This document shows positions 48,354 through 55,065 of a stretch of DNA of 64,000 nt, piece by piece. The translations under genes were made by a program, and so were the position numbers. The DNA lies in sequence record MW879344.1. One strand, 5' to 3'. The first letter of the stretch is position 1. The number at the start of each line of letters is the position of its first letter. Under the pieces are notes generated by a model that searched no databases, was not told the DNA's origin, and was given only the letters and a program-made list of their open reading frames with translations.

Positions 48354-50495
48354 ATGCTATCTATTAAACGTATTTCAATGCGTAATTTCTTTTCTTTTGG
48401 TAACGCTCCACAAGTAGTGGATTTAGATAGTACTGATATATCACTTATTTTAGGTCAAAACAATGACGCTGCACCAGGAGATGACAATTCTGGTCGTAGA
48501 AATGGAGTTGGTAAATCAGCTATTAACCAAGCAATAGTTTTTGGATTGTATGGAAAGAGTATTGGGAATGATATTAAAATTCCTAACTTAGTTAATAAGA
48601 TTAACTCAAAGAATTGTGAAGTTATTATTGATTTCGAAAAAGATGGCGTAGAATACCGTATTGAACGTGGGCGATCACCCACGTTTTTTAATTTCTATCG
48701 CCTTGATGAAAATAATAATGTATCCGATGAGTCGCGTGGGGAAAAGAAAGATACACAAGAAGACTTAACTGGAATCTTAGGTATCTCACAACTTCTTTTA
48801 GAACATATTGTAATTCTAAATGCAAGTGTAGAACCATTCCTATCACTTTCACAACAGAAACAACGTGAAATTATCGAAGAATTACTTGGTATTACACAAC
48901 TTACTGAGAAAGCTAACCTACTTAAAGACATGTACAAGGAAACAAAACGTCTTGCAGATCAAGAAAAGTTTAAAATAGAAACTATTACTGAATCTAATAA
49001 ACGAATTGAACAAAGTATAGAGTCATTACAGTTAAGAGCAAATGAGTTTGAGTCTAAAAAGATTAAAACTATTCAAGAATTAAATGATCATTTACGTGAT
49101 TTCGAAGATGTAGACTTTAATCATCTGTTAGAACAAGCTTCTATAATGGAAAAAGCCATTTCTCACAATAAAGCACGTACTAATCTTGAAAATCGTGTTG
49201 CTCAACTGGCAATAAAGCATGAAGATTATTCAAATTCACTTCAATTGAAGAAAAATGCCCTTCTTAGAAGTATTCAAGAGTTAAGTACTTTTGATATTAA
49301 TAATGAACTAGAGAAACATGAAGAATTAGAAACATGGAATACGTTAGAACAATTATTAAAGGATGCATTGAATACCAAACGCTTTAAAGAACAACAACTA
49401 CGATCAGTAACGGATAAAATAACACTTCAAGAACGTTCATTACTAGCTGAACAAAACAAACTAGCAGATCTTGCAGATAGCAAATGTCCACTATGTAAAA
49501 ATTCACTAGAACATGATGATAATCATGCAGATATGAAACATAAATCTGAAGAAGAAGTTCAAAAGATACAATCTAGTATAGAAGTACTAAAAGGTGAAGT
49601 GCAAACCTTACAATTTGAAATCGAAAGACTTGAAATTTTTGAAATGCCACCTAAACCAACTACATTCTATAGTTCATTATCTGAAGCAAAACTACATGAA
49701 CATAAACTAGAAGAACTAACAAAGAAAAGTGTTGAAGATGATATTAATATCTATGATGATGAACTAATTCTAGCTTATACTGAATTAGAAAGTACTGAAA
49801 TTATGGAATATAATGAAACCTTTAGTACTGATGAAGTTAGAGAACTACAACGTTCATTTAATTCGTATGTTTCATCATTGGAACGTGAAAGTACTTCACA
49901 AAATCCATATTTTGACCAGATCGAGACTCTTAAACAGAATTCTCTACAATCAGTTGATTATGATGAATATAATAAATTAACAAAACTTGCAGATCATCAG
50001 GATTATTTGACTAAGCTATTGATGAATAAGGATTCTTTTGTTCGCCGCCGCATTATTGAGCAGAATATATCATTCTTAAACTCAAGATTAGAGTACTGGA
50101 TTGAAAAATCAGGTTCTCAACACACCGTTGAGTTCTTAAATGACCTAAGTGTAGACATAAATCTAAATGGACAGTCTTATGATTTCAAACAATTGTCTCG
50201 TGGTGAAAGAACACGTGTCATTCTATCGTTAAACTTAGCATTCCGTGATACATATGAATCATTGTACCAAAATATAAACATTATGTTTGTTGATGAATTA
50301 CTAGACAACGGTTTAGATAGTGGTGGTATTGAAAGTGCATGGCATATGTTACAAGATTTAAGTGCTGTACGTGGTAAAAATATCTTTGTTGTTTCACACC
50401 GTGAAGAATTAGTCAATAGAGCTAGTTCAATTCTACGAGTAGTGAAAGAAGATAGTTTTAGTACTGTTGAATTTTGTGATGCATTAGATCTATAA
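48354..50495 (+). CDS. Recombination ATPase, gp46/Rad50/SbcC-like
   Basis: Walker A NGVGKS, CPLC zinc hook, signature LSRGE, Walker B FVDE and H-loop VSH. Confidence 0.92.
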   Translation: MLSIKRISMRNFFSFGNAPQVVDLDSTDISLILGQNNDAAPGDDNSGRRNGVGKSAINQAIVFGLYGKSIGNDIKIPNLVNKINSKNCEVIIDFEKDGVEYRIERGRSPTFFNFYRLDENNNVSDESRGEKKDTQEDLTGILGISQLLLEHIVILNASVEPFLSLSQQKQREIIEELLGITQLTEKANLLKDMYKETKRLADQEKFKIETITESNKRIEQSIESLQLRANEFESKKIKTIQELNDHLRDFEDVDFNHLLEQASIMEKAISHNKARTNLENRVAQLAIKHEDYSNSLQLKKNALLRSIQELSTFDINNELEKHEELETWNTLEQLLKDALNTKRFKEQQLRSVTDKITLQERSLLAEQNKLADLADSKCPLCKNSLEHDDNHADMKHKSEEEVQKIQSSIEVLKGEVQTLQFEIERLEIFEMPPKPTTFYSSLSEAKLHEHKLEELTKKSVEDDINIYDDELILAYTELESTEIMEYNETFSTDEVRELQRSFNSYVSSLERESTSQNPYFDQIETLKQNSLQSVDYDEYNKLTKLADHQDYLTKLLMNKDSFVRRRIIEQNISFLNSRLEYWIEKSGSQHTVEFLNDLSVDINLNGQSYDFKQLSRGERTRVILSLNLAFRDTYESLYQNINIMFVDELLDNGLDSGGIESAWHMLQDLSAVRGKNIFVVSHREELVNRASSILRVVKEDSFSTVEFCDALDL

Positions 50496-50497
50496 AC

Positions 50498-50525
50498 AAA
50501 AAGGAGCCATTAGGCTCCTTTTTTT
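50498..50525. terminator. Bidirectional terminator
   Basis: AAAAAGGAGCC-atta-GGCTCCTTTTTTT; the EndoVII stop codon lies in the loop. Confidence 0.85.
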
Positions 50526-50992
50526 ATTTGTGTCATATCTAAATCACCAGATTTAATCAACTTTCGGGCTTGATTAGCTCTTTTAGCTGTGTTAGACTCT
50601 GGTACTACATTAAATGATTCTAAAATAGAACATTGTTGAGCAGATGGCAATGATTTGAACTTGCGAACATCAACCGTGAGTGCTGTGTGGTGTATATGCA
50701 TGTTTGAATAGTCTTGTTCATAATAATCTGCTAGATTTCTTAAAATTGTTGGTAAATCGGTATCTGTTAGGTGTTTAATGTATCTATCGTAAGCATTTTG
50801 TACTTTACCTTCAAATGAGTTAACAGTTCTATCTAGTACTGCTCTACATTCTTGTTCACCTTTATGATTATGGTCTAGTACTGGATCTTTTACCTTCTCT
50901 TTTATAATAGGATCTAAACCTTTTTGACTTTTAAGTAAATCTGCCCTATACTTGGCAGCCTCTTTTGAATTTTTTAATCTTTGTCGTTTCAT
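50510..50992 (-). CDS. Endonuclease VII-like Holliday-junction resolvase (gp49-like) lacking Zn cysteines
   Basis: VLDHNH...CRAVLDRTVNSFEG aligns with T4 HLDHDH...VRGLLCNLCNAAEG. Confidence 0.75.
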   Translation of the reverse strand: MKRQRLKNSKEAAKYRADLLKSQKGLDPIIKEKVKDPVLDHNHKGEQECRAVLDRTVNSFEGKVQNAYDRYIKHLTDTDLPTILRNLADYYEQDYSNMHIHHTALTVDVRKFKSLPSAQQCSILESFNVVPESNTAKRANQARKLIKSGDLDMTQIKKGA

Positions 50993-51034
50993 ATATACCC
51001 CTAAAGTCTTTATATAATTGTATTTAACGAAATA

Positions 51035-51063
51035 TGGAACGAATTAAAAATATTTGGTATAAT
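51035..51063 (+). promoter_or_regulatory. TG(G/A)AAC-N17-TATAAT promoter firing into an ORF-free interval
   Basis: TGGAAC 51035-51040, 17-nt spacer, TGg-TATAAT 51058-51063. Confidence 0.7.
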
Positions 51064-51068
51064 AAGAT

Positions 51069-51790
51069 AGTAAAACCCTGTTTGGCAATACATGGATGTG
51101 TGTTGACAGTTAGTAAAACCCTGATCTAGTCGAAAAGTAGACAGCAGATGAGAAGTTCAAACAGTTCGTTGTGCAAAAGAAACCCGTTAGAAGTACGTGC
51201 AGTCAATCAAATGCGACATAAGACACCGAGTTCACGGCAATGCGGCACATTAAAGAAGTACACTAGGCAAATAGTACTTCCTCGATAGACATTTAAGGAT
51301 CGCACCTTACGAAGTAGCTAAGGGAGTTTTTCTGGATATGAAAATTGCGATTGATTTATATACAATATAGATCCGTCAAAAATTCAGAAGAATAAGTATT
51401 AAGATTGATTGTATAGTCTTAATATTAGTGTGGTAAGCCCACGACCGTTGCACATGACCGTAATAGAGAGAAACAGAGCAACCCGCTTTCGTTCTAGAGA
51501 TAGAAATTTACGATACAATTAAATCCGACGACTATCATCGTCAGAACAATATTCAGTACCTTTATTGGTACTTTTTTATTGTCTTCATTCCCCTGTGGGG
51601 GGATGATAAAGTCCTCTACAAATCTCGTCAGTATAACAGTATTAAACGTAGTAAGTATTGAATTGAGTTTGCTTCAGTACAAACGAAGTGAAGTACAGAA
51701 CAAACGAAAATTCTTTGACATTCGAAGAATGGCAAATTAAACAGTATAAAATATTCTTAAATTCAAGGTACAAAAAAACCAGCAACTAGT
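51069..51790 (+). ncRNA. Candidate large structured non-coding RNA, family unassigned
   Basis: Own promoter, no ORF of 60 aa or more on either strand, at least 12 hairpins with G-U pairs on + and a GAGA tetraloop; candidate ends at ~51577 or ~51797. Confidence 0.6.
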
Positions 51791-51797
51791 GCTGGTT
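51772..51797. terminator. Terminator for the - strand gp26/gp51 unit, possibly bidirectional
   Basis: A7-AACCAGCA-actag-TGCTGGTT. Confidence 0.75.
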
Positions 51798-51975
51798 ATG
51801 ATTTTTTGTTTTCACGTTTAATCTTTTTGTTATATTGCTTCACCATCAAATCTTTGTCATTCACTGGCATATTCAAAAGCATTTCATATGAAGTATTAGG
51901 TATATGAACTGCAACTTCCATTAAAGAATTTTTAATTTCTTCGCAGTTGAAACGCAATTCAGATATTTCCTTCAT
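51796..51975 (-). CDS. gp51-like small hub-assembly protein (59 aa from ATG 51975, or the -1 frameshift extension of the upstream gene)
   Basis: TAATG overlap with the upstream stop; the frame is also open back through the slippery site. Confidence 0.55.
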   Translation of the reverse strand: MKEISELRFNCEEIKNSLMEVAVHIPNTSYEMLLNMPVNDKDLMVKQYNKKIKRENKKS

Positions 51976-52850
51976 TACTTCTTCTGGTTCTGAGATGAGA
52001 AGCCTTGAACGAAAAAACTGCTTGGATCGAATTGAAGATTTTCCAAAACCCATTCATGACCACATTCAGAACAACCTACGTCCATTTCATGTGATACCCC
52101 AATATTATTAATATAATCTGCTTTTTCACGAATTTGTTTTAAAATAAAAGCAGGTTGTGTTCCTACCCAATCAGCAATAAATTCGTCTTCTTTAACAATC
52201 ACACCATCAACTGTTTCAATATAATCAATATTGGCTACAGTCATGTCAAAACTTAGCTGAGTCATTTTTTCAAATACATCAGTAAATTCTTTCATTTTTT
52301 CTTCGTCAGTCATTTCTACATTTTCTAGTAGCTGTGCTCTCTTTTGCTCTTTAAACATTCTAAGACCAAATTCTGAATGTTCTTTCCATGTGTGAGGTTT
52401 AAATTTAATAATTAACCCACCAATATCTTCAAGTATTAGTGTTGGTTGTTCTTCAAGTAATTCAGCACTGTCTAGTAAGTACTGTAAATTACGTTCAAAG
52501 GCACCATGATGACCACATTCAGGACAATTTACTTCAATTTGATATTCTGTTTCTTTCGTTGCTAATTTTATGCCAATTAGCAATAATTCAACATCTGGTA
52601 CAAACAAGTCACGTGCATTTGAAATATTCGGTACACAGTTTTGAATAACATTCACTACAGCTTCACCATTCATTAGTGCATCTGGATTGTTAAACATCAA
52701 TTCATCACGTGCTGAACGTGCACAAATACCACATTCAACAGTATCGCTAACTAACACACCTTTTGGATATTTAATTACATCATTACTTACTAATTTAGTA
52801 TATAAAGTTTCTACTTTTGTATACTTTGATAAAGGGTTCATTTGATTCAT
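51975..52850 (-). CDS. Baseplate hub assembly protein, T4 gp26-like
   Basis: MNPLSKY, ARDELMFNNPDALMNGEA and two CxxC motifs (CPECG, CSECG); GGAG SD before 52850. Confidence 0.7.
   Translation of the reverse strand: MNQMNPLSKYTKVETLYTKLVSNDVIKYPKGVLVSDTVECGICARSARDELMFNNPDALMNGEAVVNVIQNCVPNISNARDLFVPDVELLLIGIKLATKETEYQIEVNCPECGHHGAFERNLQYLLDSAELLEEQPTLILEDIGGLIIKFKPHTWKEHSEFGLRMFKEQKRAQLLENVEMTDEEKMKEFTDVFEKMTQLSFDMTVANIDYIETVDGVIVKEDEFIADWVGTQPAFILKQIREKADYINNIGVSHEMDVGCSECGHEWVLENLQFDPSSFFVQGFSSQNQKK
52011..52017 (-). other. Putative -1 ribosomal frameshift heptamer U_UUU_UUC
   Basis: In frame (agT TTT TTC, Phe-Phe) 12 codons before the gp26-like stop; the -1 frame runs 71 codons. Confidence 0.5.
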
Positions 52851-52914
52851 ACTGACTCCATAATAAATACGTCTATACAATATTTTGTATAAAGTTATTT
52901 ATGAGGAAAATTAC

Positions 52915-55065
52915 ATGGCAGGAATTAGCTCAGATTATATCTTGCAACAGATATTAGATCAGAATGTTGCCGCTAATGATAATTTAAGTGCGATGCGTAC
53001 CTTACTTGTTGACATTGAAAAAAATGGCAAAACTGGTGGAGGCGGTGGTTCTGGTGGTGGTGACGATGATACCCGTAGAAGAAACCGAAATGATAGAAAC
53101 AATAATGATAGTGCATCATTTTCTAAAGCATTTAAAGATATTTTTGGTGAAATGAAAAATATTGGCGGTTCAGTACTAGGCAACAATGGTTCTATTCAGA
53201 ATACTGTTGGTGCAGTTGGTGCATCTGCTAGAGTATTACAATCATCGTTAGGTAAATTACCAGGTCCAATTGGTGCAGTTGCATCAGGATTTATGCAAAT
53301 TGTCCAAGCTGGTGTGGCAGTATACGAGTACTTGAACGAACAATTGAATATGTATAATCAATTGAATAGTGCAGGTCTAACTCTTGCTGATGGTATGTTA
53401 ACTGTTAGAAAGGGTGCAGCAGGTGCATTTTTAAGTATCAATGAATACTCTAAAGTACTAGAAAAGAATAGTGATGCCATTGCAGCTATGGATGGTCAAT
53501 ATGGTGATGGTGTAGAACATTTTGGTAAATTACTAAATACCGTCCAATTGACACAAGAAAAGATGGGTTTATATGGAGTATCGCAGCAACAATTAGCTGA
53601 TCTTACTGCTAAAAACTATAAATTCGAGAAGATGTATTCAGGTCAACAACAATTAAGAAGTATGACCGAATCACAAAGTACTGAAAAATTTGTCGGTACT
53701 ATGACATATTTAAGTAAGACAGTTGGTAAAAGTGTAGATGAATTACTTTCTAAATTTAATGATATGGGACAAAATTTAGATACTGGATTATCACAAGATG
53801 CGTTAACACAGTATTACGGATTATCAGAAGATAAAGCCGCCCAAGTATCAAAAAGTATGAATTCTATTTTTGCTAGTATGGGTGAAGCTGGTGCTCAATT
53901 ACAAAAATTGAACGCAAGTAAATTACAAACAAACGCCTTACCTGAAGAATTTAATAACCAGTTTACACAAATGTATACTGACCAAATTAAACAACTTCAA
54001 CTTGCAGGAATTACTGATGAGAAACAACTTCGTCGTCATATGTCACAATATGTAGCTGACCATAAGCGTCAACTAGATGATGAAATTCGTTATCAAAATT
54101 TGGCAGGTAATACAACAGCAGCAGCATGGTTAAACCAATTAAGAAATATTGAAAATACATTAAATGATCCTAAAAATCAACCAAGTCCTATTATTGAAAA
54201 CTTCACTAATAGATTTAATTTATGGATAGGTAAAACATTCACTGAACCATTTAATAATATGTATGTAGATATTCAGGAGAAAACTGCATCTTATCTTACT
54301 AATTTAGCAGATAATTCAGCAAATGCTTGGGATTTCACTGCTAAGTTAGTTCGTGATGGTTTAAAAGCTATTCCTAATGTTTTTAGTGATGGGATGACAT
54401 ATCTTGTAAGTTTACTAGAAGGTTGGGCAACTGATTTATTTGGTGATAGTTATACTCAAGTATCCCAATCATTTGAAAATTTCATGAATGACTTTATGAA
54501 CTTGCCAAATATGTTATGGGATTCTATAACTGGTTGGTGGAATAGTAGTCGTGATGATAAGATAGATGGAATAAAATCTGCTGCGAGTTCAATGTGGGAT
54601 AATATTAAGGGTGTTTTCACTGATATAGGAAATACTACTCCACCAGGACAAGAAGAAACTAAAAAATCATTTATGGATATGTATAATTCTTTAAATGATA
54701 AATTGAATACATATTTGAATAAGTTTAAAAGTTGGTGGAATGGGGATGATGAGAATCAACCTACCGGACCAACACCACAACCTACACCAAATAAAAATCC
54801 ACCAATTGCAAATCAACCAAAAACAGTAGGTCAACAGAAAGTAACTGCACCAGCAGAATACACTAAACCTATTAAAATTGAGCAAACGGATCAAACTGCA
54901 CCTGATGAAATGCAGACTGCACAAAATAGTTCTGGCTCAGATGCCACAACTAAGATACTTGCAGCAATACTAAATAACTTAGAAAGTCAAGGACAGGCAA
55001 ATAGCCAAGCTGCGATTATTTTAAGACAGATTGCTGATAATACAGAACCTGCTCGAAATGTATAA
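52915..55065 (+). CDS. Tape measure protein (gp29-like)
   Basis: ~716 aa, helical Ala/Gly/Gln-rich with Trp/Phe periodicity; adjacent to gp26; GAGGA SD before 52915. Confidence 0.65.
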   Translation: MAGISSDYILQQILDQNVAANDNLSAMRTLLVDIEKNGKTGGGGGSGGGDDDTRRRNRNDRNNNDSASFSKAFKDIFGEMKNIGGSVLGNNGSIQNTVGAVGASARVLQSSLGKLPGPIGAVASGFMQIVQAGVAVYEYLNEQLNMYNQLNSAGLTLADGMLTVRKGAAGAFLSINEYSKVLEKNSDAIAAMDGQYGDGVEHFGKLLNTVQLTQEKMGLYGVSQQQLADLTAKNYKFEKMYSGQQQLRSMTESQSTEKFVGTMTYLSKTVGKSVDELLSKFNDMGQNLDTGLSQDALTQYYGLSEDKAAQVSKSMNSIFASMGEAGAQLQKLNASKLQTNALPEEFNNQFTQMYTDQIKQLQLAGITDEKQLRRHMSQYVADHKRQLDDEIRYQNLAGNTTAAAWLNQLRNIENTLNDPKNQPSPIIENFTNRFNLWIGKTFTEPFNNMYVDIQEKTASYLTNLADNSANAWDFTAKLVRDGLKAIPNVFSDGMTYLVSLLEGWATDLFGDSYTQVSQSFENFMNDFMNLPNMLWDSITGWWNSSRDDKIDGIKSAASSMWDNIKGVFTDIGNTTPPGQEETKKSFMDMYNSLNDKLNTYLNKFKSWWNGDDENQPTGPTPQPTPNKNPPIANQPKTVGQQKVTAPAEYTKPIKIEQTDQTAPDEMQTAQNSSGSDATTKILAAILNNLESQGQANSQAAIILRQIADNTEPARNV

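Follow-up and report, generated by a model that had tools for sequence, protein, structure and literature searches.

The 64,000-nucleotide stretch of sequence record MW879344.1 analysed here (hereafter the window) carries, on its minus strand between positions 52850 and 51796, a gene for a protein related to the T4 baseplate hub assembly proteins gp26 and gp51, and directly after it a small open reading frame (ORF) in the -1 frame. The question raised by this locus is whether these are two genes or a single gene that is read in two frames. A preliminary description of the DNA had proposed the latter, by programmed -1 frameshifting. Judged by the sequence signals and their conservation in relatives, it is highly likely that a programmed -1 frameshift on a T_TTT_TTC heptamer makes short and long forms of this gp26/gp51-type gene, and, as lambda does with G and GT, the gene very probably yields two forms, a short one resembling gp26 and a long one resembling gp51. 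The elements concerned are the following.

51975 to 52850, minus strand: gp26-like hub/tape-measure assembly protein, 0-frame coding sequence (CDS) with a short product of 291 amino acids (aa), from the ORF list, Pfam and phrog_150.
52858 to 52855, minus strand: Shine-Dalgarno sequence GGAG of the gp26-like gene.
52011 to 52017, minus strand: slippery heptamer T_TTT_TTC (pattern X_XXY_YYZ) at Phe279-Phe280, the proposed site of -1 tandem slippage.
51796 to 52011, minus strand: putative -1 frame continuation, gp51-like C-terminal domain (Arg-Ser-Arg-Leu-Leu ... Lys-Lys-Ser), with its stop codon at 51798-51796.
51796 to 51975, minus strand: small ORF of 59 aa (phrog_18291) whose ATG overlaps the 0-frame stop (TAATG); a 'hypothetical protein' in GenBank relatives, with no function assigned there.

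The minus strand reads AGT TTT TTC GTT at 52019-52008, and the heptamer is in phase with the ATG at 52850 (52850-52016 = 834 = 3x278). The 0-frame stop TAA (51977-51975) overlaps the downstream ATG (51975-51973). From the heptamer the -1 frame stays open for 73 codons (FFRSRLLISEPEEVMKE...), which gives a product of 351 aa versus 291 aa. After a -1 slip this product would read ...DPSSFF-RSRLLISEPEEVMKE..., and the predicted junction peptide of the long form ends ...FDPSSFFR, where the 291-aa form carries ...FDPSSFFVQGFSSQNQK instead. The first 12 codons of the continuation (52011-51976) precede the annotated ATG and overlap the 0-frame tail. The in-frame heptamer, the open -1 frame with its roughly 351-aa product and the downstream ATG without a clear Shine-Dalgarno sequence are thus all as the preliminary description had them. 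Only two in-frame TTTTTTY heptamers occur in the putative coding sequence of the window (roughly 60 kb), and behind the second of them the -1 frame is closed within 3 codons; the dipeptide Phe-Phe is written T_TTT_TTC in 2 of its 27 occurrences there. Because the motif is so rare and the other site closes early, a heptamer with an open -1 frame is more than a chance coincidence. Heptamers of the class H_HH.U_UU.Y are among the most efficient -1 frameshift motifs in Escherichia coli (Sharma et al., PMC4066793), and the three variants found at this site in the window and its relatives (T_TTT_TTC, T_TTT_TTT and A_AAT_TTT) all belong to this class.

Over the 1.5 kb around the site the window matches Erwinia phage pEa_SNUABM_49 at 100% identity and Serratia phage BF at 99.5%; both are Rak2-like jumbo myophages, BF being classified in Eneladusvirus. 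The 291-aa protein matches Pfam family PF12322 (T4_baseplate) with 84.5 bits (cutoff 24.5) over residues 55-280 as well as phrog_150 ('baseplate hub'), and a BFVD fold search retrieved T4-like hub assembly proteins with TM values up to 0.85. Jumbo phage genomes contain one PF12322 gene each; in this Rak2-like jumbo myophage (Eneladusvirus) the gp26/gp51 family is represented by the gene at 52850-51975 alone. The hub protein of the window contains the Cys-x-x-Cys pairs C-G-I-C, C-P-E-C and C-S-E-C. Yersinia phage records (for example fHe-Yen9-03) wrongly name the hub gene product 'Lead, cadmium, zinc and mercury transporting ATPase', and JGI calls it 'ribosomal protein S27E'; presumably, the Cys-x-x-Cys pairs are the cause of both errors.

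Conservation was assessed in 104 loci without a separate gp51. These comprise 21 cultured jumbo phages (the window included), 80 loci from IMG/VR, and the phages P-SSM2, Melnitz and phiW-14. The cultured set consists of the Rak2-like phages Yen9-03, CBB, GAP32, XbC2, Kaldavass, Hallingskeid, EJP2, 7t3, A4, 121Q, Ecwhy_1, Turkey5, RaK2 and XaC1 and of the more distant Vibrio phage 2.275.O, Agrobacterium phage Atu_ph07, Salicola phage SCTP-2, Pseudomonas phage PA5oct, Stenotrophomonas phage RAS14 and Xanthomonas phage XacN1. The preliminary description had staked its proposal on the persistence of the heptamer and the open -1 frame in relatives. All 104 loci have an in-frame H_HH.U_UU.Y heptamer at the site, at hub protein identities down to about 23%, and the -1 frame behind it is open for 62-95 codons. 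Among the cultured phages the heptamer is T_TTT_TTC in 19 and T_TTT_TTT in 2, always at the same terminal Phe-Phe. The 0-frame stop follows 1-11 codons past this dipeptide and the -1 frame is open for 71-82 codons, so that the predicted long product has 346-355 aa in 20 of these phages and 380 aa in SCTP-2. P-SSM2, Melnitz and phiW-14 also carry the heptamer and have the small ORF in the -1 frame. The 80 IMG/VR loci, found by a scan with the hub alignment and mostly 28-33% identical, contain TTTTTTC (70 loci), TTTTTTT (3) or A_AAT_TTT (7); the -1 frame is open in all of them, spanning 72-95 codons in 79 and ending at the contig edge in one. Where the heptamer is A_AAT_TTT, the unshifted protein ends ...NFS*, and the conserved NFF would be restored only in the shifted product.

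An abundant marine clade within the IMG/VR set has lost the C-terminal Cys-x-x-Cys pair (...IKKGAPxxYEVPVTFDTSNFFV) and has kept the heptamer and the extension; its nearest cultured kin are PA5oct and Atu_ph07, not the cyanophages. In the record of Escherichia phage CMSTMSU, marked UNVERIFIED, the run at the site is T5 and not T6, and the hub gene has a second break upstream of it. Most likely, this T5 is a homopolymer sequencing error and not a natural variant.

A long form encoded in a single frame was found in none of 95 homologous protein clusters (244-316 aa), nearly all of which end 1-15 residues past the Phe-Phe. A search with the hub profile gave 3181 matches among 1.84 billion representatives. 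Among the top 150 of these a single-frame long form is likewise absent; each match ends where the profile ends, and where proteins are longer the extra length is N-terminal only. The protein of the small ORF retrieved only 8 clusters and no Pfam domain.

For the small ORF, no start codon is conserved across the relatives. The spacing from the 0-frame stop to the annotated start varies between a 1-base overlap and 53 nucleotides (nt). The first ATG of RaK2 lies 33 codons into the extension, that of PA5oct contains no ATG over its whole length, and several GenBank records leave the small ORF unannotated. A codon alignment of 19 Rak2-like sequences has a mean third-position identity of 0.50. The codon before the Phe-Phe is variable and encodes Ser, Asn, His or Arg, yet its wobble T, the TTT and the TTC are each present in 19 of 19 sequences. 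The first -1 codon after the heptamer is CGN, encoding Arg in 19 of 19 with a third-position identity of 0.26. Identities at the three codon positions of the -1 segment (0.64/0.76/0.45) resemble those of the hub body (0.65/0.77/0.50). Since the wobble T, TTT and TTC are fixed and the next -1 codon has a free third base, the frame under purifying selection switches right at the heptamer, before any codon that could serve as a start. The AlphaFold2 models, as predictions, agree with a switch at this position: the hub body is modelled with a pLDDT of 90 and its 0-frame tail (residues 283-291) as disordered, and the 73-aa -1 segment is predicted to form a compact helical domain (pLDDT 92.7).

What the extension might be is indicated by T4, where gp26 (208 aa) and gp51 (249 aa) both belong to PF12322. 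T4 gp26 ends ...KEFFELL*, a few residues past the same Phe-Phe as the short product of the jumbo phages, and T4 gp51 runs on past the equivalent point (...FKLLVNPDEIF...KMIPAERGF...), so that it shares the continuation LLxNPDEI ... M-x-P-x-E-R with the predicted long product. In hhalign comparisons the long products align with a 23-member gp51 family alignment at E = 6e-5, collinearly across the shift site to the C-terminus, and the jumbo-type extensions, compared by themselves, reach E = 2.2e-4 against the final 60 residues of gp51. For the -1 ORFs of P-SSM2, Melnitz and phiW-14 the corresponding value at the gp51 C-terminus is E = 1.3e-8. The domain beyond the PF12322 body is homologous to approximately residues 200-249 of gp51. 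When the T4 gp51 sequence is used singly the match is weak, and significance is reached only with the family profile. This profile comparison ties the small ORF to the C-terminus of T4 gp51, and cyanophage records call the same -1 ORF gp51; the label 'gp51-like' in the preliminary description was right. A second precomputed Pfam family, PF28602, is assigned to T4-type gp51 proteins, and it did not appear in a local Pfam scan of T4 gp51.

T4 resembles the jumbo phages also in the position of its gp26 and gp51 genes next to hub and tape-measure genes. It differs in having a gene of its own for each form, the two being paralogues transcribed divergently, in an internal start of gene 26 that gives gp26', and in a body that is about 70 residues shorter than in the jumbo phages. 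The Phe-Phe of T4 gene 26 is written TTC TTT and is not slippery. No slippery heptamer exists at the end of gene 26 in T4, Acinetobacter phage Stupor or Aeromonas phage 60AhydR15PP, all of which have a stand-alone gp51, and two of these three phages have lost the Phe-Phe as well. Because these T4-type controls lack the heptamer and the jumbo genomes have a single PF12322 gene, the sequences indicate that, in the sample examined, short and long forms come either from one gene with a slippery site or from two paralogues, never from both. One publication counts T4 gp26 and gp51 among the hub assembly chaperones and states that the particle contains no gp51 (PMC3004832); gp51 is also named hub assembly catalyst.

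Cyanophage P-SSM2 has a layout identical to that of the window, with T_TTT_TTC at the terminal Phe-Phe of gp26 followed by a small gp51-like ORF in the -1 frame. This ORF (57 aa) is annotated as 'gp51 baseplate hub assembly catalyst'. P-SSM2 differs in its shorter body (239 aa) and in an extension that is much closer to T4 gp51, as reflected by the E-value of its group. According to the accessible part of one comparative study, cyanophage gp51 has about 20% of the length of T4 gp51, and the gp51 of cyanophages and of vibriophage lacks the first ~200 residues; a frameshift is not proposed in that part (Sullivan et al. 2010, PMC3037559). P-SSM2 is annotated with two genes, and the portions of the sources on cyanophage gp51 that were available likewise do not propose a frameshift.

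Signals that might stimulate slippage were sought around the heptamer, and the window has one candidate downstream.

51986 to 52004, minus strand: candidate weak stem-loop and possible stimulator, from RNA folding; it begins 7 nt past the heptamer.

In 91 distinct relatives the 55 nt past the heptamer fold at -10.9 kcal/mol, compared with -7.7 kcal/mol in control segments from the same genes (standard deviation 3.3), and pairing probability is maximal at nt 7-12 past the heptamer. The downstream hairpins differ from clade to clade. An Rfam scan of the region gave nothing relevant.

Explanations other than ribosomal frameshifting have to account for these patterns. The GenBank records annotate two CDSs, and the stop and start codons overlap as TAATG in the window, BF, Yen9-03, XbC2, Kaldavass and 121Q; the 59-aa ORF might therefore be translated alone, by coupling or reinitiation at TAATG, with the heptamer being a mere choice of Phe-Phe codons. 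The preliminary description had kept plain TAATG coupling as its alternative. It does not fit, because the 0-frame stop and the ATG shift or vanish among relatives, and in RaK2 and PA5oct no ATG that could be used lies close to where the conserved peptide begins, whereas the -1 peptide is kept from the heptamer on: its motif R-x-x-L-L-x-x-x-P-E-E-I is conserved upstream of every annotated start and shows a coding-type codon-position pattern. Furthermore, the downstream ORF is always in the -1 frame although three frames would be possible, and T_TTT_TTC, a rare spelling of Phe-Phe in the window, is fixed where synonymous sites are only about 50% identical. The homologue of the small ORF in T4 is the C-terminal domain of a full-length protein. 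Taken together, two ordinary genes are a very improbable explanation. An accidental open -1 frame, or one gene split by a homopolymer indel, deserves even less credence. Homopolymer runs are error-prone, and the low-quality CMSTMSU record with its T5 and its otherwise broken hub gene is a case in point. However, over 100 genomes and contigs, each sequenced independently, show the same arrangement, and neither the 95 clusters nor the top 150 representatives contain a single-frame version. Chance and artefact are effectively refuted.

Transcriptional slippage is harder to separate from a ribosomal event, since the site is a homopolymer run (T6 in the window, T7 in RAS14, XacN1 and Melnitz) and one inserted U would yield exactly the same 351-aa protein. 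RNA polymerase would then add an extra U in the T6 run, and a minority of mRNAs would encode the fusion in one frame. Productive slippage by bacterial RNA polymerase usually needs at least eight to nine identical bases, and the run is never longer than 7 T in the loci read. Runs of AAAAAAA and UUUUUUU have been noted as prone to transcriptional slippage (PMC4066793). Yet the seven IMG/VR loci with A_AAT_TTT have only five T and still show X_XXY_YYZ in the specific phase. Conservation concerns the heptamer's phase and a C or T at its position 7, not the length of the run, and the pairing peak 7-12 nt downstream is at the spacing expected of a ribosomal stimulator. These features make slippage of the polymerase improbable as the source of the long form.

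Ribosomal frameshifting, the preferred reading, would proceed as follows. Most ribosomes would stay in frame and end at 51975, which would give the 291-aa gp26-like protein. A fraction would pause on U_UUU_UUC (52017-52011) while tRNA-Phe occupies both the P site and the A site; the two tRNAs would slip back by one base, and reading would continue in the -1 frame to 51796. Such tandem -1 slippage of both tRNA-Phe molecules is most likely the mechanism. The resulting 351-aa product would gain about 70 aa that fold into a helical domain, the homologue of the domain at the C-terminus of T4 gp51, and the ratio of short to long form would be set by the efficiency of the frameshift. If the analogy with lambda G/GT (PMC5009743) and P2 E/E+E' holds, the body common to both forms would bind the adjacent tape-measure or hub protein, and the domain present only after frameshifting would add a second contact that nucleates hub or tube assembly. 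The presumed partner is encoded next door.

52885 to 55065, plus strand: tape-measure-like virion protein of 726 aa, divergent neighbour, from phrog_14121 and weak matches to tape-measure phrogs.

The tape-measure gene is adjacent and divergent, as the preliminary description had stated, and its homologue in pEa_SNUABM_50 is labelled 'putative tape measure protein'. This protein is the likely client of the chaperone pair. The adjacency holds in Rak2-like phages and apparently also in PA5oct and SCTP-2, where the neighbour is a large divergent gene, detected in PA5oct as structural by mass spectrometry (MS). The PA5oct homologue of the hub protein is not flagged as MS-detected, though its neighbour is. 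As far as the accessible part of the CBB virion mass-spectrometry table goes, the tape measure protein CBB_251, orthologue of the 726-aa protein and abundant in the virions, is listed with 29 peptides, and CBB_250 and CBB_249 do not appear; CBB_250 is nonetheless labelled 'structural protein' in GenBank.

Lambda G/GT, and the P2 E/E+E' and Mu-like systems, share with this locus a short and a long product with a common N-terminal body and a small extra domain, as well as a tape-measure gene next door; neither product would be expected in virions. The P2 heptamer, T_TTT_TTG, is similar to T_TTT_TTC. The differences concern the protein and the gene order. Lambda gpG has about 140 aa, whereas the jumbo phage protein belongs to PF12322, has about 280 aa and contains Cys-x-x-Cys pairs; and the lambda pair lies between the tube and tape-measure genes on the same strand, whereas the jumbo pair is divergent from the tape-measure gene. 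The preliminary description had suggested that the mechanism of G/GT operates in a T4-like jumbo phage. Comparison supports the frameshift part of this suggestion, but brings to light no sequence kinship to known tail assembly chaperone (TAC) families. The hub protein matches no TAC family in Pfam, a PDB sequence search with the hub and gp51 profiles gave no relatives, and a Foldseek search against the PDB returned nothing below E = 0.4; homology of the hub family to known TAC families is accordingly not claimed. A wide VIA-align comparison gave generic helical-hairpin matches and one sub-threshold TAC-like match, to YqbN (3klu_A; Z 7.3 over model residues 133-249), a member of the XkdN-like TAC family. 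This match is a lead only, as is the sub-threshold similarity of the extension to the TAC of Microbacterium phage BonaeVitae (E = 1.6). Searches of AFDB Swiss-Prot and AFDB clusters retrieved unnamed prophage 'baseplate' relatives and, as weak matches, 140-aa Xylella prophage proteins only. In the record of Acinetobacter phage Stupor, gp26 and gp51 are both annotated as 'tape measure protein assembly chaperone'. The chaperone idea thus already circulates in annotation; a paper stating its basis was not found.

Several points weigh against the frameshift and chaperone reading. The occurrence of slippage is inferred from sequence signals, conservation and homologies, and the 351-aa product is a prediction; the public sequencing runs that contain this sequence are DNA metagenomes, with no RNA runs among them. 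The hairpin of the window (approximately 52004-51986) is weak and not significant by itself (z = +1.08), and the family consensus has no Shine-Dalgarno-like stimulator upstream of the heptamer, so the efficiency of the frameshift could be low. Lambda G/GT shifts at a few per cent and has no known stimulator. The ATG that overlaps the stop codon may permit independent synthesis of the 59-aa protein in this lineage. The similarity of the jumbo-type extension by itself to T4 gp51 is only moderate, extending over 34 columns at the E-value given above, and the gene does not have the place between tube and tape-measure genes that its counterpart has in lambda. A G/GT-like chaperone role is plausible but inferred, by analogy with lambda and from homology with T4 proteins.

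The surroundings of the locus are those of a T4-like phage, and a further element stands directly 3' of the -1 ORF stop.

51777 to 51797, minus strand: bidirectional intrinsic-terminator-like hairpin with a T-run.

This hairpin marks the end of the two-frame transcription unit. On the other side, the gene beyond the tape-measure-like gene is presumably a gp20-like portal gene, as read from its translation. The gp26-like gene and the small ORF have as their second neighbour a gene for endonuclease VII (160 aa, minus strand), on which a gene for a gp46-like (SbcC-type) recombination endonuclease subunit (713 aa, plus strand) converges within 48354-50992; the two represent ordinary T4-like replication and repair content beside tail genes. 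The roughly 800 bp from the terminator to the endonuclease VII gene (50993-51776) contain no ORF of at least 60 aa and many terminator-like hairpins, among them 51545-51524 and 51572-51555. A scan of 50900-53000 found 10 such hairpins versus 0.9 expected. Relatives are annotated with assorted tiny ORFs in the region matching 50993-51776.

Full-text literature searches found no published report of a gp26/gp51 frameshift; subscription journals are poorly covered by such searches, and an earlier description is possible. None of the GenBank records inspected annotates ribosomal slippage at the site. The long form is missing from all of them, and the small ORF appears as a hypothetical protein, as a truncated 'gp51' or not at all. 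This annotation gap touches at least 70 Rak2-like records with the small ORF and the cyanophage-type records checked. A 2016 review of recoding described the G-T frameshift as conserved in long-tailed phages 'except T4' (PMC5009743). On balance, we lean towards the view that the gp26/gp51 frameshift is a hitherto unrecognised recoding event across the T4-like superfamily and the counterpart of lambda G/GT, in which case T4 would be no true exception. This would apply to Rak2-, PA5oct-, Atu_ph07- and XacN1-like jumbo phages, many uncultured marine phages, cyanophages and phiW-14. The mechanism itself is of a known kind; the family of sites is broad and deeply conserved. With 3181 representative clusters matching the hub profile, it would add a large family to the recoding sites of bacterial viruses. 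A single gene whose slippery site is fixed would encode both the gp26-like and the gp51-like form in these T4 relatives. Because both forms appear to be encoded by one slippery gene there, gp26 and gp51 of T4 itself may be understood as a short and a long form of a chaperone pair whose ratio matters, an idea that can be tested in a tractable system.

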